From Convolutriloba macropyga (Eukaryota): a stretch of DNA of 64,000 nucleotides. Under the pieces are notes generated by a model. It saw only the letters and a program-made list of their open reading frames with translations. It did no database searches and was not told the DNA's origin. Location: the NCBI RefSeq assembly GCF_964194025.1, contig NC_134475.1:13330001-13394000 (forward strand), given 5' to 3'. The stretch's first letter is position 1, and every line of letters starts with the position of its first letter. Below, piece after piece: positions 7,131 to 27,722 of this stretch. A program made the translations under genes and the position numbers.

Positions 7131-10100
7131 TATGTCATCTTTGTCTTTTGCTACCGAGAAGGTGGTGCTGTAATTTCTCGGTTTCAATTTTACCGAGATT
7201 TTTTGTTAGCATGTCAGCTGCTTGTTTGTCTGTAGGAATATACTCTAACTTCAGTATACCTCTCTGGCACATATCTCTAAGATACTGTATTTTGATTGCA
7301 AAATGCTTAGTTTTACTATGGTGAGAAATTTGCTTACTTCATGCAATACAGGCTTAATTATCAAGAAACAAATTAGGCCGGCTTGGTACAGGAAGGTTGA
7401 GTTCAGCTAAAATACCCTTCAAGTATCACATTTCTTGAGCAGCTGAAACACATGCGTAAACTTCAGCCTCCGCTGAACATGTATCAATACTGTTTTGGAT
7501 TTTACTTGCCCAACTAATTGAGCCAGAATTTGTGCACATTTATAAAAGAACCCCGATGTTCCCAGCCCAGTCAGAGTCGCTATAACCAGCCAAATTGTCA
7601 ACCACTGATGTCCCTTTCCTGAAAGATAGATTTAGATGTTTTGTACCTTTTAAATATCTTAGTACATGTTAAGCAGCAATCTATTGCTCCATTTGTGGCA
7701 TTTCAAGGAAAGAACAAAGCATGCGCCGCCTGTGAAAGATCTGGTCGTGTTGATAGTGCAAAATAGTTAAGGCTCCCAACAAAACTCCGATAAGTTGTAT
7801 TGTCAATATCAGGTTTATCAATGTGCAAACTTGGTGAATTTTTGTTTTTCTGCAAGAGGTGTCGATACACTTTTGCAGTCGCTCATTCCATATTTTATCA
7901 GGAGGTTATCAAATGATTTTTCGTGACTAATTTCAACTATCCCATCGGAGAACTCAAATTTCATTCTCAAAAACCATTTGAGATCAGAACATTCACTGAT
8001 AATGAATTTTTTGACATCTTTCCCTCAAACCATTGATAAAAATCAGTTTCCGGACAATAGAAAATAATATCATCTACCCAAACGCAAATCATTGCCAAAA
8101 TGCTTTTCCGTTTTTTGATGAATAAAAAAAAGATCATTTATGCATGTTTCAAAGCCTATGGTTTCCAAATGTTCTTTAAAAGTATGGAACCAATTTCTTC
8201 CTAACTGTTTCAAACCGTAAATGCTGTTGTTCAAATTACAAACTAATGGATTACCATCTGGGTCAAGTCTTACAAAACCCTCAGTTGAAAAATGTATACA
8301 TTTTCTTCAGTTGGTACATTCAAGTACGCTGTCTTGATGTCCATTTCGTTGTGAAGACCACCTAAATTTGCCACTATTTGAAGTATGATACGTATGGTAC
8401 TCAGTCTAGTAGTTGGTGAGTATGTGTCTTCGTAGTCAATACCTTGTTGTTGACTATAACCTTTTGCCACAAAACGTGCTTTGTGTTTAGTGACATTACC
8501 ATCACTACCATATTTTTTAGCAAAATTCCATTTGCTCCCAATTGCTTTTACAATTTCTGGAAGAGGAACTAACTCCCAAACGTGGTTTTCAACTAACGAA
8601 TTATATTCTTGCTGCATTGCGTATCGCCTGTTTTCATTTGTCAGGGCTTCTTGAGTGTTTCAAGGCAGTTCAGCTTATCATTACAAGATTTCTTCCACTT
8701 CTGCAGAGAACTCAAACTAATTAGTATTCCGGTTAAGTCGAGCAGATCTACGAAGAGGTGATAAATAACTGTCTACTGTCTCCTCGTTCAGGATTGCAAT
8801 GGGTTCATTGCAAAAATCTGTCTCATTAACATAACCAAAGTTAATATTTGCTACTGAGGGATCTTCCGAAGAATGTTGAATGTGATCGTTTTAAGCTTTG
8901 CAAAATATCACATCCTGAATATTCATACTGAGTTTTTTTTTAAACCTTGTAGCTCGCTTGCTCGTTTGAAATTCATATAATAAACCTTTTGCTGTTATTT
9001 GAAAATCCAACAAAAACTCCGGAGCACGATGATCAAGTTTCCCCGAAACTGTTTTGAATGTAGCTAAAGGCCTTACAGCCAAAAACCTCTACAAAAGAAA
9101 CGTTTGGTTTGGATCCATACATTTTTTGTAAGGTGTTTCTCCAATTGCCGAGTGAAAACAGTAGTTTTTGGTGTAAAAAGCGTTGTTCATTGCATAGGTC
9201 CAGTGTTCTTTTCCCAATCCTGCGTTATCCAACAGACATCTTGTCATGCCGGTAGTAGTCCACCATTTTCTCTGTATTTTACCTTTTTCTGGCGTATAAG
9301 CAGCTGAATTTTCAAGTCTCACCTTATTTTCACAACAGAACCTGGAAAATTGACTAGAGGAAAACTGTCGCGCCGTCACAAGTGTTTGAGGTGTACCTAA
9401 ATCTGCGCAAAGCTGTTGTAAATACTGGAGGCATTCGTCGCGAGTCTGTCTAAAGTAAACTTTCGAATATCTGGAAAATCTGTCGGTAAATGAAATACAG
9501 GTGTTACTGGTCATAAAATTTCAACATGAACAATATCAAGCGCATTGTTGGCTCTGTCAACGCCTTATTTTGGAAGTCGTTTACGTTTTGCGTTGTTTAA
9601 TTCACAAGTGCCGCAATCCAATTCGCTGCTATCATTTTTGTCACTTGGCATCCCATCAACATGGTTTTGCAGTTTTATCAAATCCTGAAAATTATTCTGA
9701 CCTAATCTGTCAGTCTCATGATTGATAAACTTAGCACGCCGCTGGAATAGATTGTTCTCTTGCATCAATGGAAAAACAGTGCCATCTCTTGTTGTTATCT
9801 GATCGTTTTCTCTAAATTCCACTTTATTACCAGATTTTTTTAATTTACTGAAATTAAATTCCTCCGGGAAACAAAAAAAATCGGGAACAAAAAGAGAAGA
9901 GCTTCTGACCACGTTATTTTTGCTCTCGTTCCATTATCCTCACACGCATAAAATTCAGCCCTACCTTTTCCTTGGATTTCGGATTCTGAATTGTTTGCAC
10001 AGCCAACAAAACAAATCCCGAAGAATTTTCATCTAATGTAGCGAACATTTCGCGATCTTTGAACATGTAATTTTTATATCCTGAATCAATTATTATATCA

Positions 10101-11820
10101 CTTATTCGTAGCTAAAGCATTGTTATCACTACTTGCAAAAAAAGCAAAGTTTTTTTTCATAAGTTGAGTTCATTTCCCGAAGTAAATTAGCTGTTTCAAT
10201 GTTACTGGTACCATTTTTAAGTTAACAACATTTGCTGCAGTCATGGTTGTTGATTTTGCAAAAAGAACAGTACTTTTTGTTTTGGTTTGCGGCAATCGTT
10301 TGCTAGGTGATCTAAAATACCACAATGATGACATTTCTTGTTTCTTTTGTTAGAATCTTTTGACCAACAAAACGCTTGCTTACGACCCATTTTACCACAG
10401 AAATTACATTTCAATTTTGGGTTTTGTCTATTATTGCCGAAGAACGTACACTCCAGACACTCAACATTGCTACGTTGTGTTTTATCATATTCAAAATTTA
10501 CTAAATCTCATACTATCCAGATTTTGTTCATCCTTACTGAATTTGCAAATTGTTTCAAAATTACCAAAATCTTTTGTGAGAACTGTCAAAATAGTAGAAA
10601 TAAGCATGGGCTCACTGACTTGTTCATCAACTTCTCTTAAATTACTTTGCAACTCTTCAAACCGTGTGATATAATCAAAAACACTTTCATTTGCTATTAT
10701 TTTCAATTTAGTCAATTTTTCATTCAATTGCTGGAGGCGAGGCCGTTCACAACTTTCATATCTATCACACATTACACATTACGGCCCAAGCCTTTGGACA
10801 ATCTTCTTTGTAAGGTCTCAAAAACATTGCAGAACGTTTTTCAAGTAATTGTATGATCTCACACCAAACACGCATCTTTAACTCATCGTATTTTTCCGGA
10901 GCTTATTTCTAAGTTTGGCTTCCTCGGAAGCATTAGGTTTCAATTTTTTTTAAGCTCAGTTTCATCACATTGCCCTTTTAAAACTCCTAAAAGTTTCATT
11001 TGTAACATCTTTGCTTCAAATTGATCCTGAAAATAAGCAAAGCCTGTATCGCACTGTGTAAAACTTGCAATGTTATGTTAATGTTTCAAATGACTATTGC
11101 AGTAGTTAGAACATGTTATGAAAAACGAGTTTCTTGTGCATATTATACCTCGGAATCAAGAATCAGAAAATTTGAACTTATTTGAGTGACTGGTATTTTC
11201 TATCTCTTAAGAATTCCCTTAAATTGTGTGCGTTTTAGCCGGAAAAGGCAAACACCACTTTCATTATGAAATTTTTTGCTGTATCAAAAAACTGTTAGAT
11301 GACTGCAAAATCTGTCAATATTCTATTACATGAATACTCAGATTTTTTCTGTATCAGGGATGAATAGTTGGCAATATTCCGACAATTGTTTGTTCATATT
11401 GAAAAAGTTGTCAACATGAGAAAATAAAATATTAATCTCCCCAGCTTCAGCATACAATATGTTCCGTGAATACAAGAAATACTGTGGATATGCTGTCGAC
11501 GTGATATCAGCTCCGCATTGTCTGTGATAGAATATCTTCTGTGTTTCTAATTATTTTCAGTTAACAAAATCTATCACAGAAAATTTTGGACATGTATCTT
11601 TAAACCAATGATTATCTTCGATACCTTCAATTTGCAGTTGGAATTTCGACTTTCAATACTTTGAAAACTGCAGAATACAATGTTGCTGTTTTTTAGATTA
11701 AAAAAATCGAGCATGAAAAAGATAAGAAATGCGCGTTACTTTTTCCCTTTTTTGATGATTAATCGTAGGGATTTTAATTTCCTGGGCCCGTAACCTATCA
11801 AGGTTATGTGACGGTAGGGC

Positions 11821-12069: not shown

Positions 12070-14678
12070 GCTAAAAACACTTATGCCCCCCCCAGCCGCC
12101 AATTTTATTTTTTTCTCACAGACAAAATGGCCCTCTGTTTTTAAGGCAGCCACGACTAAGGTCTCTCGTCACTTGTTTGAGAGCAATTTGTAGCAAGTTA
12201 GGCGATTCTCTTTGATGTATTTAATTTGATTGGTGTCATTTTAGTTGTTTGTTTTTCTTTGCCGGAAGCGAAGAATCGATTAAATCTGCCCAGTTTAGTT
12301 CAACCAAATTGCTCACACATAGCCCAAAGTTGAAATCTGCAAGATTGTTCGTTCTTCAAATATGTCAATCTCAACTGCGTTTCGGTTACTGTTTTTGCTA
12401 CAGGTATCCTTCCTAAAGAATATTTTGAATAGGAGGCAATGTTCAGGAATTTGTTTCTAGTCAACTCTGGTTGGATCGGAAATGACTTCCTTGAAAGCCT
12501 TGTGACCTGTCAGCAATGGGGCACTACCGACATTTCGTCGATTCAATAAAAGGACTAAATATTAATCTCAGATGTGTCAAAATGATATTTTTGAAATTTA
12601 CTGATTTCATGCTTATTTGACTATAATACAATCGTATCTATTAGCTGAAAAGGCCTCAGAAAAAACGCTTAATTTTCTCATGCAAACTAGATATTTACAT
12701 CTACGTTTTTATGCTTTTTGACTGATTGATTTGACTTGGGTGGCTTTTTGCGCTTACTCACAGAGATAATTTGGAGCGTCTATTGATGAAGTTTGCTATA
12801 AATAGGCAAATCAAGCGAAATATTGCTCTGTAGTTTTACTAATACGGCTCGTTAGAGTTTTTGCGTGACAAAAAACAAAAAATGATATCAAGACCTTGCT
12901 GCGGATGTTTCAATCAGGGAGGAAAGTGTAATAAAAGTTTATCTGTGTTTGTTTATGTGTTTGTTTATCTGTGTTGTTTATCTGAGCTTTCTTCTGAGAA
13001 ATAGTGGTTTAAGGTGTATTGTAAGCATTTAATTTGGGGATCTCGGCGTTTGGAGTCTGTAGTGTAGTTGCTGATGAAAACATTTATTTTGCATTTTTTT
13101 GTTCAGGTTGCTGTAAAATATTTTTGTCGTTGTCTTGCTTTGTGCTTTGGAGCAACATGATATTGCAGTTTTCAAGTTCTTCTTTGTAGTTTGCTAAGTC
13201 ATATCCAAATACTCATCTGAAATTTTATGGTACCTTGAAGCTCGATAAACTTGAGAAATGACAAAAATTTCCAATAAATTGCGTAAAACTCAGTACGATT
13301 TTGTTATTGAAGTTTTCATAAGCAATGCAGATACCTCGAAGAGGTTTTAGGTAACGTGGTCCTGAATTCCACAACATCTATATGACTGTTACTGTGCAGG
13401 CCAAATTGTGAAAAAAAAAAACGGAATATACGATAAATGCTCTTAATGAGTTCAATAACTCAAAATCTCATTTCACCTGTTCATGTCGAGTGCAAACCTA
13501 CTAAAGCTAACTCTATTGCCATGTGAAGACGTGGCTCTAAACTTTTTTTATTTTCGAAAGCTCTATCCTGAGTCAAGAAATTTGGAAACACACTTGTTAC
13601 GGCGTCTAACTGTTGGTTGGTTCCAAAAGTCGGTTTTGTTCCACTGATTTGTTTAGTGGAAAGTTGATTATGATTGTCGTCAAACTGCCTTTTTCTTCAA
13701 AAACTTCGCCATAATCTACATTTTGTGTTTTATCTGAAAACTCTTCCAACTAAAAGTCGCAACAACTCTGAAACTACCAGTTAGAGTGATGTTATAAATC
13801 TTTCCTGTCGAGTGTAAAACTGCTGAAGTATTTGACTGGTGAAAAGTGCGTTTCGCTATATCACTTCAAATTGCTGGGCACGGTTTAATTTGGTCGTTGT
13901 ACTTTGATTGGCCGAATTTTTATTGCAAGCTAAAAATCACGAGATGGTGAGCTTTGTCGTATCTGGTTGAAATAGCCTGACTATCAAGTTTAACTGGTGG
14001 CACGATTGATTCCAGCACGAAATTTTTTGTATCTGCCGTCAAATCTGTATCCGCCGGTTACGGATAAAAAAACCGGATTCTGCCCAAATGGACTATCTTC
14101 ACGATTTTTTTGTAATATTTTGGCTGGTTGGCTAAAATGCCTTGCACTATAACTATAACGCTGAAATACACTCACCCAATACAGAATTGCTACCGGGGTG
14201 AAATAGTTGATTTTTGATAGGTAAACTAGGTTTCCTGGGCGAAAACCTGTGTTTCGACGGTCAGAACAAAAACATTTGCGAGATGTTGCTCGTCCATAAT
14301 CTTTCTTTTTAAGTGTCAAATTGTCTTTTGTTGGGTAAAGTTGGTTGGTAAATTGCCTAAGCAATGTTTTGAAAGCAATCAATGTTTTGAAACCAATGTT
14401 TTGAAAACCAATCAATGTTTTGAAACCAACCAAAATGTTAACTTCTTGTAAACTGTTCTGTGGAACCTAGTTTACTTTGAAGAAAACTGACCCGAGAAAC
14501 AATGTTTTGTTTCTTTTTTCAACTGTTTTGTTTCAGTGCACAGCAGCTCAGGTTGACTAGCTTTAATTTCATAAATTTACGCTGTGATTTGATTAGAAAC
14601 TTACCAAATCAAGTTCTCGAAAACCAAATTTACTTAATGGTAAGTTAACAGATCACAGGATGCACAGGATTACTTATT

Positions 14679-17600
14679 AATAGCCGCCCTCATCTTCTCA
14701 GCCGGCTATTATAGCGCTCCTTTTTACAATTCAAAGAATTTGAATTGTATTGGGGCGCTGTCTTTTTACGACTCGAAGAGGAGTAATGGAGAAGTCCTTT
14801 TTTAAATCAATTTTATTGGAGTGAATTTTGAAGCGCGAAATGAAACTCGTGAAAAAATTTGGAGCGATTTTGTTGCTGAACAAAACGAAGAGCGGAGCGA
14901 AAAGAGAGTGGTTTTTTAATAGCCGCCCTCATCTTCTCAGCCGGCTATTATAGCGCTCCTATTTTTTTACAATTCAAAGAATTTGAATTGTATTGGTGTG
15001 CTGTGTTTTTTTTAAGATGTGTTCACACATTTTTCAATGACTTTGATCTTTCAAAACGGGATAACCAGATAAAGCCCAGCGGGCTTTAAGTTTCATTAGG
15101 GGCCCAAAGTGGGCTCTTGGTAGTCCTACAAGTGCTTATAGTGGTGCAACTGCTGGGATGGCCTTAATTTAAGGTTAAAAGGTCATTGTTAGGAGTTTTT
15201 GGGCTCAAAATGGTGCAATTTTTCATAATTTTTGTTTGAATAGTCTTAGGTTTAAATTTTTCAAAGTTGATGAAGGTTTTTTGCGCGACAAAATTGCTTG
15301 TTATGACCATTTTTTTTTTTGAGCTATATGTTTTGGTACTACAAACACAAACACGCAAAATGATACTAATTTTTGCAATTTTTTTTCAGGTTTTTTGAAA
15401 ATTTTTGTCATATTTTGAGATTTTTTAGCCCTAGGTGTCAAGAAATCTCATCTAAGGTTTGATAACGGGTTTGATGATAGATTATTGCTTAGTTTCTAGT
15501 GGTAATGGAATAGTTATCAACTTTTTGCCATCATGAATTTTATCATTTTTTGACAAAACTTGCAATTTTTTCATATTTTTTGACGTTTATTGTCATTGTT
15601 TGTTTGAGTTCCAAGGGCAATAAAACCTCATCAGTCTAAAGTTACTGGAAAATTTTCACAATAAAGTTACTGGAAAATTTTTACTTGACATGGAATAGGT
15701 TTCAACTTTTGAATATCACATATTTTAGCGATTTTTTTTTACAAAAAATCGCTTTTTCAGGTTTTTGAAAATTTTCGTTATTTTTCAGTTTTTCCACCGT
15801 CAGGGACCAGGCAGTCTTTTTTGAGGTTTGTTAATAGGGCACTGCATAGTTTCTAGTAACAAGGGAATGGTTTTTAACTTTTTAATGTCTCGAATTTTAG
15901 CCTTTTTCGATAAAATCTGCAATTTTTTTTAATGGTTTTGTCAGTTTTTAATATTCGTCCATTCTGAAGTGTGAGAAAACATATTCCACGTTCTAAAAAA
16001 GTTACTGCATGGTTTTTAGTTTCAATAGATTTGTTTTCAACATTTTAACATTTCGACTGTTAGAAGTTTTTTGATAGAATTTGCAATTTTTTCACGTTTT
16101 TTTTTCAAACTGTTTGTTTTTTTTTCTTGCCTCAGTAGCGAGGTAACTTCATCCAGGTTTCGATAGTATGTGTTTAAATAGTTGCTAGGGGGCAATTGAA
16201 TGGCTTTCAACATTTTAATAGAAAAATTTTTTTTACTTTTTGAAGTTTTAATTTTTAAAAAATAATGTCTATCGACCTTTGAGCCAATGAGTTTTTTTAA
16301 AGTTTGGAATTGGGTTAGTGGATATCCTCTAGAGACATAGAAATGATTCTGAAGATATTTATATCACAATTTTTAGCATCATTTCCTTATAATTTGCAAT
16401 TGATTTTTTTTTTTTAAGTTTTTCACTTTCGAGTTAATCGATCTTCAAGGGCCAATGAAGATTTTTCAGGTCTGGCTGATATAATACTGGATCGATTTCA
16501 GAAAAAAAATTGGTTTTTAGCATGTTTGTGAAAAAAGTATTTTTAAAGGGAAAAAATTTTGTCTTAGGTTTAAAAGCTTCAACAGTTTTAGCAATGAGTA
16601 TATTTTTGTTTAGGTTTGATTCTCTTAGTTTCTCAATTTTATGATGATTTTGTTTGTGTTCTGGCTGGCATTGTTCAATTGATCTGCTGGTCAGGTTGAG
16701 CACGTCTGAGTTTTTCATTCAATTCTTTGAATTGTATTTCAGGACATGTCCTATGTTTTTTTACTTCGTCGAATAAAAAATGTTTCGCTTTACCTCATTT
16801 TGCCGCTTTTTCAACATTTTGCGTGCTATCTCTAGGCTATATTCTCTCTTCTCTCATTTTGCTAAAAGTGATTTTGAACATCAGTTGCTCAGCAAAGCAA
16901 TTCAAAATGAACAGAGTCAGTATAAAAAATTGAAGTCAGAAGTAGAAACGGGATAAACCCATAAAGCCTAATTTTAGATGCCCGCTATTTGAACGTCGTT
17001 CCTATAAGTCTTAGTTACCATCTCTAATGCTTAATGGTATTGACAGTAGCCCCTGTAGCCTCTTTCTAAGAAACAGAAGTACGTTATGTTCAACTACGAA
17101 ATGCCATCAAAATAAATCGGACTTAAAAAATGTTTTTGTACAAAAATCTTTTTTTTTCAATATCTTCTATTCTTTCAATCCCAATCATGCTTATTGGAAT
17201 CAACGGCAGCTATTTTCCGGCAATCTGCTGGGTATGTTGTTCATATCGCTGTTTCCTAGAGAGCGAGAAATTGAGGTGTGAAAAAAATTCTGTAAGCGAG
17301 CGAAATTTTTTGTTCACGTGCGGCATTTTAAAGCAGTTTCTCAATTTTTTTCTAAGAGGTTTGGTTATGATTTGCTTTTAATTTTAGGCTGGGTTTGGTA
17401 GTGGTTTGAAGGTTTCTGATAATCTATATGATTTTTATGCTAATTCGTATGTTTTTCATGTATTTTGCTGATTTTTGGGCTAATTTTTACGATTTTTTTT
17501 TGAAGATACCCCTATTACTTGAGCAATTTTTAGTTAACACGTGGATACAGTTTTGTGGATATGAAACAGTTTTTTGTTGAGAAATATGTCGGAAAATTGG

Positions 17601-18964
17601 AACTAATTTTCTTAATTTTTCGCAGTTTTTCGGTTTTTCTGTTTTTAGACAAGTTTCTTAACCTATTATGTTTTGCCTATTATTTTGCAAGGATCTGGGT
17701 ACCCTATTGGCTGAAAACAATTTTCGTTTAGATATATGTGCTTTTGTAATATTAAAAAATTAACTTTTTCCAGTTTTTTGTTCAAAGTTGTTTGTAAGAG
17801 CTTACTTTTTCATGATTTGGCTTCAATTATTTTTAAAAACTCTCTTAAGTGATTTTAGTAGTTACTAGTTGTATTGATGAAGTAATTGTAGCGGAGATAG
17901 TTTTTTGTGGTAGCAATTTATGACAGAATTTGATCAGATTTTAATCATATTTTAATGGATTTGATTTTTTTTGACTTTTTTGTTTTATGGTTTTATTCAA
18001 GATAAGCGTAAATTATTGGAGGCACGTTTTGTCTGATGAGCAGTTGGATGGCATTTAAGTGGATTTCCACTTCGAGTCGTTTCCGGAATTCTTCCGGCTA
18101 TGTTTTTTTTTAAGATCTGTTCACACATTTTCATGATTTTTGAAGTCAAATTGGTGTAGTGATTTTGGTCACGCCGAAACAGGAAGTGGAGCGAAAAAGC
18201 GAGTGGTTTTGCGGCGTGAAATTTTTTTGCTCTAAATTTAAAGTAGAGTGAGAAAACGGTGTTTGAACAAAAATTTGCTTTCCCGCTAGTGGTTTTTTGT
18301 TTACATGCGGCCATTTCACTTTGATTTTTACTGTTTTTTCGATTTTTCGGATTGGTTTTTTTCTAAATGGTTTTTCCAATCTATTCATAGTCCGTTCTTA
18401 GCCTAGTTTTCTGTTTAGTCGATGAAAATTCTTTGAATTGTGTGTCAGGACTTGTTCTGCTATGTTTTTTATAGCGCTCCTAATTTTTTTTTACTTCGTC
18501 GAGCTTTTTTTCCCTTTACCCATTTTGCAGCTTTTTCGATATTTTGCGTGAAATCTTTTTGACTTCTCTAGGCTAGTTTCACTCTTCTGTCATTCTGCTC
18601 AAGGTCCTTTTAAACAGCAGCTGCTCAGCAAAGCAATTCAAAATGAACAGAGTCAGTATAAAAAATTGAAGTCAGAAATAGAAACGGGATAAACCCATAA
18701 AGCCCATTTTTAGATGCTCGGTACTTGAACTTTGTTCTCAAAAGTTTTAATTACTATCTATAATGCTTATTGGTATTGATACTAGACCCTGTAGCCTCTC
18801 ACTGAAAGACAGGGGTATGTTCAATTACGAAATGACAGCAAAATAAATCCCACTTTAAAAGGTTTTTATACCAAAATCAATTTTGTTGATATTTTCTTTT
18901 CTTTCAATCCCAATAGAGATATGGGAATCAACGGCGGCTATTTTCCGGCAATCTGCCGGGTATG
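14679..18964 (+). mobile_element. Five-layer nest of HINE elements A[D[B[A[D]]]]
   Basis: 5' ends at 14679(A), 14725(D), 14767(B), 14918(A), 14968(D); matching 3' subTIR + hairpin ends at 16755(D), 17236(A), 18102(B), 18464(D), 18964(A). Confidence 0.8.
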
Positions 18965-19839
18965 TTAATATACTTCTAGAGGTTAAAAACTTGTATATCC
19001 GTTAAAGACAAATACTAGTACAGGAAGGTGAGCTTCGATACCCATTGATTGACTAAACAAATTTAAAGACCGGTCATGATGACTGACTTATCCACAAATA
19101 CTAAATCGTTATATCCTATATATTTATCCTATTATGAAATAAGATTAAAGTTCAAGACTTCGACTAGATGAATGGCTTGGCCGCGGCCTGAACAACAGCT
19201 AATAAAGAAAGTATATCAGGACAAGTCCACCAGTGAATCTGGAGAACCGGATAAACAAAGTGAAAAGTCCCTAACCGGGCAATCACAAAAGAAATTTGAA
19301 AAATTGAATTTGGAAGACGGACACAGATCAAACAGATAACCGTTCTCAAGATTCTATTAAGTAAATATCTACAGAGAATCAAACAATAATATAGAAATTA
19401 TAAGGAGGCAAAAACTGATACAATATTTTCCCCTTATGAGGGCAAAATTAAATTAAAAAAATTATCTAATTTTGAGAGGAATGCAATCTATGGCAACCAA
19501 TTTTTGAACATTTGGATGCAAAAAGAAGATGCAGATTTTCACAAAATGGGTAGAATTTTACATAGAGAACACAAACTTGCTCTTATTGGTGCCCAGCTCT
19601 CCAAAACCATCATTTGTTGCTCGAGAAACTGAAAACCGCAAATTTCACTGCTGTTAGTATTTTTCTAACGACTTTGAAACCTCTAGTGTTGCTAACTTTG
19701 CTTAATTTTGTGAAGTTAATTTAGGGACCCATTAAGCTCAAAAACCGAAAAAAAAACACAAAAAATAATATAGATTCTGCACTTAATGAGATTCCAGATG
19801 GTTCCACTCTTATCTTCTAGAATGCGTATAAAAGTATTT

Positions 19840-21914
19840 AATAGCGCGCTCATTTTTTTCATCAGGCTATTATTGCGCTTCTATTTTTACGACTCGAAGA
19901 GGAGTTATTGCGATCCGTTTTTTTTCAAATCGGTGACTTCTCTTTGCACAGTCACAAAGTCAGATGCGGCGCGTGAAAACAAGTGCTAAGGTCAATATGC
20001 TGAAGAGAAGTCAAAAGCAGAGAGAAAGAGTGATTTTCATGCTGTATTCTATGAGAGCCATAAGTGTGTCAAAAATTTTCGCTAAGCGAACGATATTTTT
20101 TTGATCACGTGCGGCTTTTTCAGAGTGGTTTTTTAGTTTTAACTCTAATTTTTCAGCAAAAAGTGTTTGTTTCATATATTTTGGCTAGTAATAGTATGTT
20201 GTGAAATAATTTTTCCAATCTGATGCAAATTTTAGACTTTTAAATTTTATTTTGATAAGATTTCCCCGGTGTAACGTTTTTTTTAGCACTTTTTAGGCTC
20301 TTTATTAATTTTTATAAAAGCAATTTGGGTCTTTTTATGGTTTCAGGTTAGTTTTTTGTGTATTTGGGGTTCGTTTGATTCACTTGATATTGATTGTGAG
20401 TTGTGTTTGTTAAAGAAAATCGGGTGAATTTAATTAAATTTTGGCTCACTTTAGTCTCTTTTTTTAGAATTGTTGAATATTTCTTCTGATTTTGAGTTTG
20501 CTAGCTAATCGACAGGTATTTAATAGGTATTCCTACTAAGAGGTGACAATTTAGTTTTAAGTAGTGCAATTTATGTATTATAATGAATTATAGAAATTTG
20601 CAATGTTTCCTTATTTTTTTCGTTCTTTGTTTTCTCTCTTTTTTATTAGGATGTCTCAGACAGGCAGGCCGTGGGTAGATCACTGATCGAGGAGAAAATA
20701 ATTTTGGAGGGTTGTCTGAATGTAATTGATGGGAAGCAGCGTTTTGTAGACCATTTTTTAAAGAAAATGTTTTGTTGTTTCTTTTTTTTTCTCGGTTTTC
20801 TCAATTTGTGTTCTTTATTTGAATAAGAACTATTTTTTGCAAGTGTTTTTTCCAATAGTTTTTTTTGTATCTAAAAAGATGTGGTTTTCCCCATGTTGTT
20901 CTGACTGTTTTTAATTTGACTTTGTTCTACAAAAATAACCATAAATGAGAGGCACTTTTTGGTTGATTAGTAAATGGCTGGGGTCTAAGTATCTACTCCG
21001 AGTTGGTTCTTCAGTCTTCCAGCTGTTTTTTACTTCATCGAACAAAAATTTGCCTCAACTTGTCGCTTTTTCGACATTTTGTGTGAAGTCTTTTTCTCTG
21101 GTGTAGTTTCATTCTTCGCTTTTTCTGCTTAAAGTGCTTTTAAACATCAGTTGCTCAGCAACGCAATCTAAAATGAACAAAATCATTATCAAAAAACGGA
21201 ATCAAAAATAGAAACGGTATAGACCCGTAAAACCCAATTTTAGATGCCCGCTTCTTGAAGTTTATTCGCAGTTACCATCTTTAATGCTTTTTATTATTGA
21301 TACTAGCCCCTGTATCCTCTCATTAAGAAACAGGAGTCTGTCGAACAGCAAAATTCAATCAAAATAGCTTGCTTTTTTGAATGTTTTTCATCAATCATTT
21401 TTTTTAATAATTGCTCTTGAACAAAGTTCATAGCAATTATTGTAAGCTTGTGTCTTTTTCATGCAAAATTTTTGCTTGGCGGTTTTGACTTTTCGAGTGA
21501 CTTTTATGCCCTTGACTTTTTGCGTTTCGCGTGATCCAAAATTCTCTCTCAATCACAATTTCAAGCAGCTGTACTCAATTGGCGGCAATTTAACACTAAA
21601 AGTCAAATGAAAAGTGCACTGAAACTGGTGCCATGTTTCACTTTAAATCTTAATAGTGGTATATGTTAACCTCTAATGTGGTTATTTGAAGCCCACTATA
21701 GAACTTCTTAGTCCCATTGAGGCTACCCCTCCTCCCCCCCCCCCCCCCCCACCGACTGAAGCAGGCGGCAATTGATTAGAGCTCCCACTAGTCGTTCGAG
21801 AGCAATTCTTCCGACGTTTAGTGGGTTATGTTTTCATTTTTCTGTTCTTTCATCAATCCTAATCGGTGTTATGGAAATCAATGGCGGCTATTTTCTGACA
21901 ATGTGCCGGGTATA
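19840..21914 (+). mobile_element. HINE family A element holding a family B element (19888 to ~21025) and a family E element (21409-21830)
   Basis: A ends aatagcgc../ggcggctatt+hairpin; B 5' TACGACTCGAAG with a degenerate 3' end; E AATTGCTCTTGAAC / GTTCGAGAGCAATT + hairpin. Confidence 0.7.
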
Positions 21915-22058
21915 TTTGATTTTGACTGGAGAGAAAAGACTGTCTGTCGTAATATATTTTTATATTTCCTTTATAACAAATAATTTTGGAACTGATCGGC
22001 GCGGTTGTAATTAGCCAGCTCACCAAATGATTCCATCTGATGTACATTAATTGTTAAG

Positions 22059-22226
22059 GTTGAGAAGATTCTGAAGCGTCGAATCAGAGAAGACGGGAAG
22101 ATAATGTTATATGTGAAGTGGAAGGGATGGGACCCTAAATGGAACACGTGGGAACCAGAGGAGTCATTGGATGAAGTTCAACAGTACGAGGATTTCCTCA
22201 AAACATTCGAGGAAAAGCGTTTTTTG
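22059..22226 (+). CDS. HP1: HP1/chromobox protein exon 2 (chromodomain)
   Basis: [37 protein letters not shown]; 168 nt, phase 0/0, AAG acceptor, GTGAGG donor. Confidence 0.93.
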
Positions 22227-22618
22227 GTGAGGCTGCTTTATTATTTTTAACCAGTGCTCATGAGTTGAACTCATCTATAGTCCTAGAACCAAACGATATT
22301 TGTTTGCAGTATAATAATAATTTGGTTTCAAGTAGGTTAGAACCATTACTGTATGAACCAAGCTAGAACTCATTTACATCCTAATTGCTAGGTGATCAAA
22401 AGATCCATAGGGTCTTTGTTGAGTGATGTCCAAATGCAGTGCTAATGCTACGGTAATTAACTCTATTTATGGTTCTGACCAGACAACCATTTTCAGTTAA
22501 CCGCGGAATACTCTGTAGCATAACTTTAGATATCAAATAAAAAGCAAATAAGCGGCTGCTGTTTTAGTTGAGCCTAATTCAGAACTTTAAAAAAGGCAAA
22601 CAGAGAAGTGCTTACAAT

Positions 22619-25600
22619 CATCCACATTTTTGACTTGGAAGAGATAAAACTTTCAAAAATTCATTTTTCTAATTAATTTGTGTATAAATAAAAAAAATCG
22701 CTTTAAGCTCAAACCATTAAACGATTTAAATAATACCGCTTTAGAGGGCCGATGAGATCTGCCATTAACAAAACAAGACAAACAACAAAATAAAAAAAGC
22801 AAAAATAATCATTTATTACGACCAATACTCAGTGTCGATTTTTTAAAAAAAATATCCGCTTAATTTTTGAAGTGACATATTTTAAGCAGATTTTAAAAAA
22901 GGTCGACTCTGAGTCTTGATCGTAATAAATGATTGTTTTCGTTTTTTATTTGGTTGTTTGTCTTGTTTTTTTTAATGGCAGATCTCATCGGCCCTCTAAA
23001 GCGGTGTTATTCAAATCGTTTAATGGTTTGTTTAAAGCGATTTTTTTTATTTGTACACAAATTATTTCAGAAAATGAATCTTGAAAAATGAATTACAAGA
23101 AACGATAAGTCAAAATGGCATCACATAAAACTTAAATTAAACAAATTAATTTTACTTGACTAAAAAGATACTGGAGCTTTCCTGAATGAGACTTAATGGG
23201 AAATAGGGCGAAGCAGTTTTTAATGTCGTGAAACCATCTGCACTTTTTAATTTTTATTTACACCATTAGCTATTGGCTGAAATCATTAAAGAGGTTCATT
23301 TTACCTCCATAGGATGTTCGATTAAATATTGCTTAAAATCAGTGTCAAAGCTTTTAAATCATCAAACCAAATGCTTGAAATTCAACAAAAAAATACCTGT
23401 ATAATTATTGCTGTGTTAAACGCCAGCTCGGCCTGTCTTTGTGTTAAAACGACAAGACTTTAAAAGATTAAACTCAAATATGGGCAAATATTCAAAATAC
23501 ACACAGTTTTTATGAAAGCTCGCTGTATCAAACTGAGAAAACATTTTTTTAAAATTCGTTTTGTAGATAAAATAGCTTTCAAACAGAGAGAAGTCTTGAT
23601 CTCTCATTTATGAGGCAAAGCTATACGTTGACAGAAGTAAGTTCGGAACCAAGATGAAAGCCATCATTTTTAAAAACAATTACATTCAAAGTCATCAAAA
23701 ACATTAAGTATCAACGGAGATCCTTGAATAGGTTCGTATATACCTCCATAAGAGGCCATTAAGAGCTGTCATTATCCAGAATATATCATATGACTCCAAA
23801 TTTAACGACAAGTTTAGGCAAAAATAATAACTAATTTTTGCGAGAAAACGGTGTCGAAAACCTTGTGATCTATTAACTAAGGGCAATGAATTTCAATTAC
23901 GCTTTCTTTCAGCATCAAGTTTGTGACACATGGGCTGTTCATGTTGTAACAATCTGGCAAGACAAAAAGTTAACATGAAATTGGGCGACTGTCCAAAAAA
24001 ATTGTAGAAACTCGTAGCAAAGTCGAAAAACCACTTCATCTAACATATGAACTCATTGAAGACTGGATTTTGGTTCACCACAAAGAAGACGGGATCTCTT
24101 TGCCGAAGCTACAGGTTTATAGAATTAAGATGAAAAAATGGCAAATATCAAAAAACAACTACAGAACTCAATGTTTTCGAAAAAAAATTTAAGCAAACAG
24201 TGTTGAAGCCATAAAAGCCATAAGCTTTTACCTGGCCTCATTTGCTCGTAAATGAGATCTCTCGACATTTGTGCCTCGATTTGAAATCAATTTGGTATAT
24301 TTATTGATCGTAAACAAAAAAGAAGTAAACTTATTTTACAAAACCATAAAGTTCGAATGTCTTTGTAGTAAAGAGCCGTGATTAGTCCAAATCTAGCCTT
24401 GATTTTGCTGCTTGTCCATGAAAACTAACTTATTTTTGCAATTTTTGGCGAAATAGATAATTTGACAAAAATGAATATATCAAAANNNNNNNNNNNNNNN
24501 NNNNNNNNNNNNNNNNNNNNNNNNNNNNNNNNNNNNNNNNNNNNNNNNNNNNNNNNNNNNNNNNNNNNNNNNNNNNNNNNNNNNNNNNNNNNNNNNNNNN
24601 NNNNNNNNNNNNNNNNNNNNNNNNNNNNNNNNNNNNNNNNNNNNNNNNNNNNNNNNNNNNNNNNNNNNNNNNNNNNNNNNNNNNNNNNNNNNNNNNNNNN
24701 NNNNNNNNNNNNNNNNNNNNNNNNNNNNNNNNNNNNNNNNNNTTCCGCAAAACTCATGTAGTAAGAAAAAATTAAATTAGCCCTCTCTGGGGATTAAGAA
24801 AATGATGCCATCGATTTTCAGGTTTACCCTTCCGGCAAATTTAAAAGTGTGCTAAGGAGGCATAATTGGCGCATATTTGATCAAAAGAAGGCTGAATTTT
24901 GAAAAATTTATGCAAAATGTTAGCTAAAAATTTGGAACAATCAGCTCGACAAATTTCCTTCGTCTCCACAGTTCAAACCAATAACACTATCGTTAACAGT
25001 TTTATTATTTTTTTTCAGCAATATTGACGAAAAAATGGCAAAAAGACAAATTGTCAACAAAAACAACGGAAATCCGTCAAATAATAAAACCTCAATAACA
25101 TTTTGGAAAACAAAATTCGAAAAAAATATCTTTTTAATTCTATATTTTACGGTTGATGATGANNNNNNNNNNNNNNNNNNNNNNNNNNNNNNNNNNNNNN
25201 NNNNNNNNNNNNNNNNNNNNNNNNNNNNNNNNNNNNNNNNNNNNNNNNNNNNNNNNNNNNNNNNNNNNNNNNNNNNNNNNNNNNNNNNNNNNNNNNNNNN
25301 NNNNNNNNNNNNNNNNNNNNNNNNNNNNNNNNNNNNNNNNNNNNNNNNNNNNNNNNNNNNNNCTGTGTTAAACGCCAGCTCGGCCTGCCTTTGTGTTGAA
25401 ACGACAAGACATTAAAAATTAAACTCAAATATGGAAAAATATTCAAAATACTCGCAGTTTTTATAAAAGCTCGCTGTATCAACCCGGAAAACATTTTTTA
25501 AATTTCATTTTGTAGATATATTAGTTTTCAAACACATAGAAGTCGTGATCTCTCATTTATGACGCAAAGCTTTACGTTGACAGAAGTAAGTTGGGAACCA

Positions 25601-27413
25601 AATAGTGGGGAATGATGAAAGCCATCATTTTTAAAAGCAATTACATTCAAAGACATGACAAAACTCAGGTATCAACGGAGTTCCTCGAATAGGTTCGTTT
25701 AAACCTCCATAGGAGGCCATTAAGAGCTGTCATTATCCAGAATATATTATACGACTCCAAATTCAACGACAAGTTTAGAAAATAAAAATTCTAATTTTTG
25801 CGAGAAAAAGTTGTCGAAAACCTTGATCTATTAACTAAGGGCAATGAATTTGTTTAATTACGCTTTCTTTCAACATTGATTTTGTGGCACATGGGTTGTT
25901 CTTGTTGTAACAATCTGGCAAGACAAAAAAATTAACATGAAATTAGGCAAATGTCGAAAAATATTGTGGAAACTCGTAGCAAAGCCGCAAAACCACTATA
26001 CCTAACATATAAACTCATTGAAGACTGGATTTTGGTTCACCAGAAAGAAGAGGGGATCTCTTTGCCGAAGCTACAGGTTGATAGGATTAAGATGAAAAAA
26101 ATGGCAAATATCAAAATTTGCTTTATAAACAAACAACAACTACAGAACTCAAATGTTTTAAAAACAATTGTAAGCAAACATTGTTGAAGCCATAAAAGCC
26201 ATAAGCTTTTAACTGAGAATATAATAATTGTTTTTTTGGGCCTCATTTGCTCGTAAATGAGATCTCTCAACATTTGTAGCTCGATTTGAAATCAATCCAG
26301 TATATTTATTGATCGTAAACAAAAAAGAAGGAAAATTATTTCAAAAACCAGTAAAACTGGAATACCTTTGTAGTAAAGATCGTGATTAGTCTAAAACTAG
26401 CCTTGATTTTGCTGCTTGTCCGTGAAAAGAAACTAATTTTTGCAATTTTTGGCGAAATAGATAATTTGACAAAAATGTCAATATATCTAAANNNNNNNNN
26501 NNNNNNNNNNNNNNNNNNNNNNNNNNNNNNNNNNNNNNNNNNNNNNNNNNNNNNNNNNNNNNNNNNNNNNNNNNNNNNNNNNNNNNNNNNNNNNNNNNNN
26601 NNNNNNNNNNNNNNNNNNNNNNNNNNNNNNNNNNNNNNNNNNNNNNNNNNNNNNNNNNNNNNNNNNNNNNNNNNNNNNNNNNNNNNNNNNNNNNNNNNNN
26701 NNNNNNNNNNNNNNNNNNNNNNNNNNNNNNNNNNNNNNNNNNNNNNNNNNNNNNNNNNNNNNNNNNNNNNNNNNNNNNNNNNNNNNNNNNNNNNNNNNNN
26801 NNNNNNNNNNNNNNNNNNNNNNNNNNNNNNNNNNNNNNNNNNNNNNNNNNNAAAAACTAGCAATATTTAAATTCCGCAAAACCCCTGTAGTAAGAAAAAA
26901 ATTAAATTAGCCCCCTCTGGGGATTGAGAAAATGATGCCAGCAGGTTTCAGGTTTACCCTTTCGACAAATTTAAAAGTGTGCTAAGGAGACATAATTGGC
27001 GCATATTTGATCAAAAGAAGGCTGAATTTTGAAAAATTTATGCAAAATATTAGCTAAAATTTTGGAACAATCAGCTCGACAAAACTACTTCGTCTCCACA
27101 GTTAAAACCAATAACACTATCGTTAACAGTTTTATATTTTTTCAGCAAAATTGACGAAAAAAATGGCAAAAAGAAAAAATGACAACAAAGACAACGGAAA
27201 TCCGTCAAATAATAAAACCTCAATAATATTTTGGAAAACAAACGAAATTCGAAAATAAATCTTTTTTTATTCTATTATTCTACGGTTGATGGACTTTCTA
27301 ATGAAACACTCACAACTCTCTCTGGTGAATATATCGATCGGCCAAAATTGACTGAAGAGAAATAAATCCAGTTGAACATATAGTTCCTCTCGCAATGTGA
27401 TGGGTCGGAACAA
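22619..27413 (-). mobile_element. Large Helentron-like family C element with an internal ~1.9-kb tandem duplication and three N-gaps
   Basis: End GGGTCGGAACAAT at ~27401-27413 shared with 33347-33360 and (inverted) 44591; 23412-25162 is repeated at 25363-27290. Confidence 0.65.
22651..23086. repeat. ~435-bp near-perfect palindrome (fold-back)
   Basis: Arms such as ACCGCTTTAGAGGGCCGATGAGATCTGCCATTAA (~22736) and TTAATGGCAGATCTCATCGGCCCTCTAAAGCGGT (~22972); centre near 22870. Confidence 0.9.
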
Positions 27414-27470: not shown

Positions 27471-27722
27471 GCCCCTGGATCAAAGGGTGCTAATATAAAA
27501 GGCTTCGATCGTGGCTTGTTGGTGGAGGAAATCGTTTCTGCTCGTGTAGATGATGGCAAACACCTCTTCTATGTCAAATGGCAAGATGCTGACATATCAG
27601 AATGGGTATCGGCAGATGACGCTGACATTTGCTGTCCACGAAAAGTTATCGCATTTTACGAAAAACATATTCGGTGGGCGAATCCGACTCCTGTGGCTGC
27701 TGAAGAAACAACCCTGTCTTGA
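27471..27722 (+). CDS. HP1: HP1/chromobox protein exon 3 (chromo shadow domain); spliced protein about 193 aa
   Basis: KGFDRGLLVEEIVSA..LFYVKWQD..CPRKVIAFYEKHIRW; TTTTTTCAG acceptor, phase 0; AATAAA at ~27789. Confidence 0.92.
   Translation, partial: APGSKGANIKGFDRGLLVEEIVSARVDDGKHLFYVKWQDADISEWVSADDADICCPRKVIAFYEKHIRWANPTPVAAEETTLS

Follow-up and report, generated by a model that had tools for sequence, protein, structure and literature searches.

A mirror-ordered stack of five short rolling-circle transposons upstream of an HP1-like chromodomain exon in Convolutriloba macropyga

The closest described relatives of the elements studied here are the HINE/DINE-1 transposons (Thomas et al. 2014, PMC4067079). 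These are non-coding, reach high copy number and carry subterminal inverted repeats of 11–16 nt a few nucleotides from the 5' end, with an inverted partner or palindromic repeat that gives a 5' hairpin and a short palindrome near the 3' end. They insert, without target duplication, at TT or T-rich sites, and the number of Ts on the flanks varies; the present elements are like them in these respects. Also similar is Cg_HINE of the Pacific oyster (Vojvoda Zeljko et al. 2020, PMC7492417), which has a left subterminal repeat with an inverted repeat, a right subterminal repeat with a palindrome, and TT insertion without target duplication. In Fusarium oxysporum, the Helitron2-like FoHeli elements show HLE2-type insertion near the 5' end of another copy, as is seen here; in that system 5' parts of less than 200 bp are duplicated, and self-insertion was proposed as the source of nested or composite elements (Chellapan et al. 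2016, PMC5148889). In the literature considered here, the target given for Helentron/Helitron2 elements is only "TT" or "T-rich", and target choice by eukaryotic rolling-circle transposons is poorly understood.

We describe here a segment of 4.3 kb, upstream of an HP1-like gene's chromodomain exon, in which five short, non-coding rolling-circle transposons are stacked. It lies in a stretch of 64,000 nucleotides (RefSeq assembly GCF_964194025.1, contig NC_134475.1, positions 13,330,001 to 13,394,000), which is called the window throughout. The stack is very probably a true nest of five non-autonomous HLE2 (Helentron/Helitron2, HINE-like) transposons, and it owes its existence to target choice: in two of the three element classes, almost all insertions fall in one short T-run close behind the 5' terminus of a resident element.

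Layers of the nest and their classification

The layers belong to classes A, B and D, and their boundaries are collected in Table 1. The initial annotation had placed five openings and five closures together with their motifs; all ten coordinates proved exact to the base, and the closures follow in the reverse order of the openings. At each 3' end, the reverse complement of the subterminal repeat is followed by a palindrome and then by (C/G)TATGTT. The claim that B resumes at ~17241 as in the B copy at ~20037 was also borne out, as 17248–17348 and 20041–20140 are 74% identical. A1 and A2 belong to different subfamilies: the A2 3' piece has 81% identity to A1 and 90% to copies in loci L004, L048 and L015. 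D1 has the short and D2 the long D form; outside ~70 nt on the 5' side and 35 nt on the 3' side, D2 has no sequence in common with short D. The D2 interior contains diverged repeats of ~190 bp that are visible by BLAST; Tandem Repeats Finder detects none of them, as they are too diverged. Open reading frames in 14679–18964 are short, at most 105 aa.

Table 1. Features of the nest in window coordinates; closures are given as the G of TATG
Feature	Positions	Strand	5' motif at opening	Closure	Remarks
A1 5' piece	14679–14724	+	AATAGCCGCC at 14679		layout identical to 24 uninterrupted A copies
A1 5' module					subterminal repeat AATAGCCG and inverted partner CGGCTATT (9-bp stem), then ATAGCGCTCC, then landing-pad T-run
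D1 5' piece	14725–14766	+	TACAATTCAAAGAATT at 14725		palindromic module TACAATTCAAAGAATTTGAATTGTA (11-bp stem), then TTGGGGCGCTGTC and T-run; fold z = -4.9
B 5' piece, 151 nt	14767–14917	+	TACGACTCGAAG at 14767		ends in T-run GAGTGGTTTTTT, the entry point of A2
A2 5' piece	14918–14967	+	AATAGCCGCC at 14918		5' module 98% identical to A1 module, plus T-run
D2, innermost and uninterrupted, long D variant (~1.79 kb)	14968–16757	+	TACAATTCAAAGAATT at 14968	16755	colinear with long D copies at window position 2373 and in L002
A2 3' piece, subfamily b	16758–17238	+		17236	ends in GGCAGCTATTTTCCGGCAATCTGCTGGGTATGTT
B 3' piece	17239–18104	+		18102	ends in CTTCGAGTCGTTTCCGGAATTCTTCCGGCTATGTT; 6-bp stem
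D1 3' piece, short D body	18105–18466	+		18464	palindrome damaged, CAGGACTTGTTCTG versus CAGGACTTGTCCTG in other copies
A1 3' piece, subfamily a	18467–18966	+		18964	starts with second copy of TATAGCGCTCC (18470–18480); ends in GGCGGCTATTTTCCGGCAATCTGCCGGGTATGTT

HLE2-type elements are recognised by terminal or subterminal inverted repeats of ~11–16 nt. The subterminal pairs found here are AATAGCCGCC and GGCGGCTATT for A, ACGACTCGAAG and CTTCGAGTCGT for B, and ACAATTCAAAGAATT and AATTCTTTGAATTGT for D. The 3' stem-loops A3 (CCGGCA..TGCCGG), B3 (CCGGAA..TTCCGG) and D2 (AGGACATGTCCT) fold, and that of D1 is mutated in the window copy and intact in others. The 5' hairpins of A (9-bp stem), D (11-bp stem) and a further class, C, fold as expected, whereas that of B does not. 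In addition, at least 11 loci contain DUF6570, Helitron_like_N (Rep) and PIF1 collinear on one strand and are candidate autonomous elements; this DUF6570-Rep-PIF1 arrangement is a marker of HLE2 (PMC11417382). By contig number, they were located at C417:108833–112879, C615:12272–16317, C16:33949406–33952876, C6:50315150–50318616, C2:34162520–34165985, C12:1424641–1428102, C1:22481140–22484533, C4:44900912–44904368, C10:15669752–15673292, C11:52324326–52327764 and C4578:3809–7354. A Helentron in the strict sense has an apurinic-endonuclease (Exo_endo_phos) domain fused to RepHel. A search with PF03372 (Exo_endo_phos) returned LINE-type-looking copies among the 150 scored of 2531 candidates, and none of these lay at a RepHel locus. 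The strict name would call for a partner that carries the endonuclease and has identical ends, and HLE2-type is therefore the safe label. From the initial assignment to Helentron/HINE, the subterminal repeats, the 3' stem-loop and T-run insertion without target-site duplication stand, and the strict word "Helentron" is avoided.

Two other transposon types were considered and rejected. A canonical Helitron (HLE1) begins with 5' TC, ends with 3' CTRR and inserts between A and T; the ends here are (T)AATAGCC, (T)ACGACTC or (T)ACAATTC on the 5' side and (C/G)TATGTT on the 3' side, flanked by Ts. A MITE or cut-and-paste transposon with terminal inverted repeats does not fit either, given that four of the five junction pairs are without duplication and that the ends are asymmetric, with an extra hairpin and TATGTT at the 3' end.

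Nesting, excision and order of assembly

A census was made of the window and 59 loci, 280.6 kb together; these loci were picked because they resemble the A and B copies of the window and are therefore not a random sample of the genome. Nesting in this sample is beyond chance, with 113 of 116 closings matching the innermost open element and 3 that do not, in agreement with the correlation of end pairs that the initial annotation called for. The guest has the orientation of its host in 63 of 63 nested cases, and depths of up to 6 are reached at other loci. The opening order A(D(B recurs at L032, L041, L045, L049, L053, L055, L059, L060 and L061; L041 and L045 are segmental duplicates, as are L035 and L043.

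When the inner layers were removed in silico, B, A2 and D1 became end-to-end matches of uninterrupted copies elsewhere in the 1.18-Gb genome, as had been anticipated. The reconstituted B (14767–14917 joined to 17237–18102, 1017 nt) aligned in one HSP over 1–1017 with ~30 uninterrupted B copies, and full-length single-HSP matches numbered 25 for A2, 4 for D1 and 23 for A1. For A1, the outcome was mixed: the full-length alignment was regained, but a unique 16-nt duplication was left where D1 had been. The A2-in-B, B-in-D1 and D2-in-A2 junctions all fall within T-runs, and the uninterrupted hosts, which act as paralogous empty sites, reveal no target duplication. The atypical D1-in-A1 junction has an extra TATAGCGCTCC plus T-run (14710–14720 and 18470–18480), which is absent from all aligned uninterrupted A copies and occurs a single time in 280 kb.

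Public short-read contigs from three runs match the junction of the left flank with A1 (14594–14697) with 0 mismatches, and the uninterrupted D join (14762 to 18103) and A join (14966 to 16756), which derive from other copies, are present in the contigs of three samples. None of these contigs crosses the nest, and the support for its assembly is therefore internal consistency only. Summed contig depth is in the hundreds of thousands to millions for the repeat parts versus ~35 for single-copy flanks, and families of such high abundance could conceivably have collapsed in the assembly. The stacked 5' ends could accordingly be an assembly artefact of a repeated family, or else transposition chimeras, cut from an outer 5' end to the first 3' end encountered, a model advanced for Fusarium elements with several 5' termini (PMC5148889). 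In favour of this, orphan 5' modules do occur in the sample: L042 carries three B modules but two B 3' ends, and L046 is similar. However, each 5' end in the nest is matched, in mirror order, by a 3' end and a body of its own, and the hosts are colinear with intact copies. In a chimera the host bodies would be missing, and a mis-join would leave the brackets crossed or truncated; 14679–18964 is also free of N. Chimeras or artefacts are for these reasons hardly credible as the source of the stack.

With a true nest as the preferred reading, its growth would have proceeded from the outside inwards. A1 (~530 bp) would have been the first to insert, at a T-rich site that lies 40 nt 3' of the predicted splice donor, followed by D1, a short D of ~400 bp, in the T-run just behind the A1 5' hairpin. 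B (~1.02 kb) would then have landed in the matching T-run behind the D1 5' hairpin. Next, A2, an A of the other subfamily, would have inserted in an ordinary T-run at B position 151, and finally D2 (1.79 kb) in the T-run behind the A2 hairpin. Because each class can enter another (A into B, D into A, B into D), stacking of this kind can recur without limit. The initial annotation had spoken of serial self-nesting in a system of several families. The several families are upheld, but five layers need not equal five events: since A[D] or D[B] could have travelled as a unit that was already nested, the number of events lies between three and five. A gradient of divergence between inner and outer layers, suggested as a check, is not seen among the layers; divergence from the subfamily consensus is 3.6% for A1, 3.8% for B, 3.5% for A2, where only 4 reference copies were available, and a less certain 4–6% for D1.

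How much of this was assembled elsewhere bears on a second explanation, by which the stack arrived as one or two ready-made composites, for instance A[D[B]] with A[D] added later. A composite A[D[B]] could be mobilised via its outer A ends or by segmental duplication. The recurrent A(D(B order and the segmental duplicates speak for such arrival, although, with B sitting mostly in D and D mostly in A, A[D[B]] would be expected by default even if composites did not move. At D[B] loci, the distances among B copies also correlate with those among their D hosts (r = 0.67, or 0.59 without duplicated loci; r = 0.38, not significant, within one D subfamily), and some composites may thus have been copied as units. 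Against this, the D copies that host B are spread over the D tree (7 label changes versus 7.6 when shuffled), and their grouping in a single clade is rejected (AU p = 4e-8): B has invaded D copies on many separate occasions. Moreover, A1 and D1 of the window are 5–6% from guest-free A and D copies, D1 is 7–14% from the D hosts of the nearest B, and none of the ~30 nearest B copies has an A at position 151. Arrival as composites is on balance unlikely, and layer-by-layer growth is preferred.

Target choice by element class

The three classes differ in where they land. A-class 5' ends lie at generic TT sites in 49 of 49 cases. B-class 5' ends were found behind the module or 3' end of another element in all 39 instances (D module 23, A 5, B 3, C-like 7, 3' end 1), and for the D class this applies to ~35 of 40 (A module 20, other A-like ~12, D 3' ends 3). 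B and D guests land 33–55 nt inside the host 5' end: the offset is 45–55 nt for D in A (16 of 18), 33–45 nt for B in D (19 of 20) and 46–53 nt for B in A (5 of 5). For A guests it ranges from 38 to 587 nt, in varied T-runs.

A simpler account is that resident elements are not recognised at all and that long T-runs are preferred, the run behind the module happening to be long. Insertion of HINE/HLE2 elements in T-rich or TT sites is indeed known (PMC4067079, PMC7492417, PMC11417382), and A guests do occupy assorted T-runs. Post-module runs, however, make up 3–10% of all T-runs when the minimum length is set at 5 to 8 Ts (7.5% of runs with at least 7 and 9.8% of those with at least 8, in a sample that is already enriched for elements), yet 38 of the 39 B ends and ~32 of the 40 D ends lie in them. 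Other T7–T8 runs in the hosts were left unused by B and D guests. It is very improbable that run length explains the pattern. The hairpin as the sole target signal was also ruled out: the B 5' module serves as a landing pad and does not fold into a hairpin (fold z = +0.3), and hairpin recognition consequently cannot be the whole rule.

For the B/D transposase machinery, the resident's left-end module plus T-run is probably a preferred target, and this preference may stem from the module's resemblance to an element end, namely structured DNA followed by Ts, which is the enzyme's normal cut site. A more tentative proposal, which we hold to be possible rather than probable, is that the enzymes of the B and D classes perform end-directed integration. 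In this scheme, what the enzymes recognise would be the left-end module of a resident from another class, and the guest would be joined, always in the same orientation, at the first T-run 33–55 nt inside. If true, non-autonomous families would form a directional chain of parasitism, D in A, B in D and A again in B, guests would find a "safe haven" inside other transposons, and the mode of target selection would be one undescribed for eukaryotic rolling-circle transposons. This genome offers a natural experiment with many insertions, in which two classes use one short site with near-total fidelity and fixed orientation and a third class with similar ends does not. This contrast could reveal what the transposase reads in its target and whether the target mimics an element end.

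Gene context and comparison with known systems

The placement of the nest in "HP1 intron 1" is a prediction from sequence. A predicted donor, ATG/GTAAGT, lies at 14637–14645, and an AG acceptor at 22057–22058 directly precedes the Pfam-confirmed chromodomain exon. Two element clusters account for 6.4 kb of the 7.4 kb between these predicted sites. Recursive stacking would explain the growth of introns and intergenic DNA here. It is also a warning for repeat annotation, as stacked 5' pieces of 38–46 nt are easily overlooked or taken for new families.

A working likeness, not one of membership, links these elements to the IS200/IS605 family (e.g. IS608), in which the enzyme reads structured single-stranded ends, the target resembles the cut site of the end, and insertion is orientation-specific. 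Unlike the elements here, these HUH transposons are bacterial, depend on transposases of another family (Y1) and go to a defined target of four or five nucleotides. Nested plant LTR retrotransposons (PMC6911290) are similar in that layer order gives relative age and some families target regions of other elements, but they are retroelements with target duplications and lack a strict shared orientation or single-site precision.

Among the closer relatives, HINE/DINE-1 elements are reported to have a general T-rich preference and neighbouring or tandem insertions, with no fixed landing site in elements and no host-guest hierarchy (PMC4067079), and DINE-1 has a microsatellite where the present elements have a plain T-run. 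Cg_HINE carries a satellite-like array between its modules, where long D has its diverged ~190-bp internal repeats, and nesting, seen here, is unreported in that study (PMC7492417). In FoHeli, the cases are few, mostly of one family inserting into itself, and usually have a single 3' terminus (PMC5148889). Here, by comparison, several families take part in a directional hierarchy, 3' ends and bodies are retained in full mirror order, and there are dozens of cases in 280 kb.

Architecture and class of the nested elements

The window corresponds to G000:C8:13330001-13394000 in a eukaryote assembly of 1.18 Gb. The nest at 14679–18964 comprises five layers, which are called A1, D1, B, A2 and D2 from outermost to innermost, the letters denoting element classes. 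When 14400–19300 was read, the five openings and mirror-order closures claimed in the initial annotation were matched exactly, and this stretch contains no N bases. Each closure consists of a reverse-complement repeat, followed by a short palindrome and then (C/G)TATGTT.

Positions of nest components and chromo exons in the window, and guest offsets from host 5' ends
Feature	Position or offset	Strand	Remark
A-type 5' ends	14679 and 14918	+	begin AATAGCCGCC (sequence reading of 14400–19300)
D-type 5' ends	14725 and 14968	+	begin TACAATTCAAAGAATT
B-type 5' end	14767	+	begins TACGACTCGAAG
3' closures, order D, A, B, D, A	G of TATG at 16755, 17236, 18102, 18464, 18964	+	reverse-complement repeats
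Chromodomain exon	22059–22250	+	Pfam
Chromo-shadow exon	27516–27722	+	Pfam
Guest D in host A	45–55 nt		16/18
Guest B in host D	33–45 nt		19/20
Guest B in host A	46–53 nt		5/5
Guest B in host B	35, 38 nt		2/2
Guest A in any host	38–587 nt		8/8

Elements of the Helentron/Helitron2 group (HLE2) and their short non-autonomous forms (HINEs) carry subterminal inverted repeats, a 5' inverted partner and a 3' palindrome, and they insert at TT or into a T-run with variable flanking Ts and without target duplication (PMC4067079, PMC7492417, PMC11417382). The nest elements show all of these traits, the one exception being the left module of B, which forms no hairpin. None of them has canonical Helitron ends (TC...CTRR, A-T target). 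DUF6570, Helitron_like_N and PIF1 occur in this order at at least 11 loci in the genome, and the DUF6570-Rep-PIF1 arrangement is the HLE2 marker of HELIANO (PMC11417382). Separately, Helitron_like_N gives weak matches (E 1e-6 to 1e-8) in very long open frames of 2468–2515 aa (G000:C10:43249862-43643187, C4:51229020-51244671, C2:35749492, C807:6497), near which no PIF1 is listed at E <= 1e-10; these frames may represent large genes or elements of another kind.

From the sequence, ATG/GTAAGT at 14637–14645 and AG at 22057–22058 would bound a predicted first intron of 7.4 kb, of which 6.4 kb is occupied by the element clusters at 14679–18966 and 19840–21913. Between the chromo and chromo-shadow exons of this HP1-like gene there are 817 N, in blocks at ~24430–26870 (gaps or masking).

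Excision, assembly and age of the layers

For the excision test, the halves of each interrupted element were joined and compared with the window and with 59 loci of the same genome. Rejoined B (151 + 866 nt) gave a single HSP over 1–1017 against ~30 uninterrupted B copies, and full-length single-HSP matches were obtained for A2 (25), D1 (4) and A1 (23). The A2-in-B junction lies within the host T-run GAGTGG-T(5-7)-GTTCAT, with no duplication in the multiple alignment, and the A2 and D1 junctions align cleanly. The expectation that excision restores the hosts thus held for B, A2 and D1 but not fully for A1, where TATAGCGCTCC stands on both sides of D1 (14710–14720 and 18470–18480). This 16-nt duplication occurs once in 280 kb and is absent from all uninterrupted A copies aligned; an older slip duplication could account for it, as could a few flank bases carried along by D1 from a previous A host.

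Short-read contigs from three samples contain the uninterrupted D join (14762 to 18103) and A join (14966 to 16756), which come from other copies. The same contigs run continuously from the unique left flank into A1 (14594–14697) and are too short to span the nest, and a run search with a query across one of its junctions listed no hit; support for the assembly across it is internal consistency only.

A1 and A2, members of separate subfamilies, share 81% identity; the best relatives of A1 are 94% identical to it, and the copies at L004, L048 and L015, three of the 59 loci, are 90% identical to A2. D1 is a short D of 400 bp and D2 a long D of 1.79 kb with diverged internal repeats of ~190 bp; only the termini are common to both. 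A1, B and A2 lie 3.6%, 3.8% and 3.5%, respectively, from their subfamily consensus. D1 lies 6.3% from a consensus built on five short D copies only, with a terminal branch of ~4% on the D tree. Divergence shows no inner-to-outer gradient, and at the resolution that this measure offers the layers were inserted within a short span.

Nesting across the genome sample

Of the 26 short D copies placed on a tree, those hosting B are scattered (7 label changes versus 7.6 when shuffled), and their placement as one group is rejected (AU p = 4e-8), so B entered D copies repeatedly. Distances among B copies and among their D hosts are correlated (Mantel r = 0.67; 0.59 without two segmentally duplicated pairs; 0.38, not significant, inside one D subfamily), so that subfamilies may have been active together, or composites may sometimes have been copied. 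The nest itself was built by three to five events.

Class-specific 5' modules, which are the subterminal repeat/hairpin stretches at the left ends, and 3' ends were marked over 280.6 kb and parsed as brackets. Here, 113 closings matched the innermost open element versus 3 that did not, bearing out beyond this locus the correlation of end pairs, and all nested guests (63/63) share the orientation of their host. Depth reaches 5 at locus L049 and 6 at L055. The nest thus exemplifies well a structure that is common here, and is not singular. L055 (G000:C3:54530460-54534374) opens A D B A D B, which is the window order plus one layer; its second A lies at position 593 of B, versus 151 in the window, so it was built independently and is not a copy.

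Elsewhere in the window, 19840–21913 holds a second, older nest, in which an A-like host carries a diverged B-like guest (5' end 19888, degenerate 3' end near 21025) in its post-module T-run, together with an unclassified insert of ~430 bp (21410–21840) that includes a C-run of ~20 nt at ~21734–21753. A-like hosts at 28799–31106, 58957–61533 and 62445–end each have a B-like guest in the same position, of the variant B' with a different body; one of these hosts belongs to a further family, C, with the 5' module AATAGCCGCACAGCGATAGCTGGGGCTATTATTGGCCTTCTCTTGG. All HINE-like elements detected in the window are on the + strand (7 perfect 3'-end signatures versus 0 on −; ~8 top-level elements versus 0), and the elements of each of the other 59 loci keep to a single strand. 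A regional orientation bias, from replication direction or selection within genes, may add to the orientation forced by nesting. ORFs that resemble a retroelement gag with its CCHC zinc knuckle, along with integrase-like pieces, lie at 9089–10772 (−).

Choice of landing site

A-class 5' ends (n=49) occupy generic TT sites. Of the D-class ends (n=40), 20 follow an A 5' module, ~12 follow other A-like modules and 3 lie directly behind a D 3' end; B-class ends (n=39) follow modules of D (23), A (5), B (3) or C-like elements (7) or a 3' end (1), and are found nowhere else. In the window, 6/7 A-like elements have a guest at the post-module site. A preference for bare T-runs does not explain this pattern, because only 3–10% of similarly long T-runs are post-module ones, and this in a sample rich in elements.

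The modules upstream of the landing pad, which is the first run of Ts within a resident element's left end, have a common layout, namely a repeat/hairpin, TAT(T/A)G(G/C), 8–16 nt and then Ts. Element 3' ends consist of a hairpin, TATG and then Ts, and some guests lie directly behind such ends. We propose that the end-cutting enzyme would also cut, or be recruited to, the end-like site within a resident element and would join the incoming strand there. Such a site would be strand-specific, which would fix the orientation of the guest.

HINE papers (PMC4067079, PMC7492417) describe no more than a preference for T-rich sequence and copies that lie side by side or in tandem. The nearest precedent found comes from Fusarium, in which Helitron2-like elements bear several short 5' termini; self-insertion close to the 5' end was given as the cause (PMC5148889). 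At L042 (G000:C4:42928066-42931967) and L046, B 5' modules are stacked at a spacing of 35 nt and outnumber the B 3' ends (three modules versus two ends), and these stacks resemble the Fusarium chimeras, which have several 5' termini and one 3' terminus.
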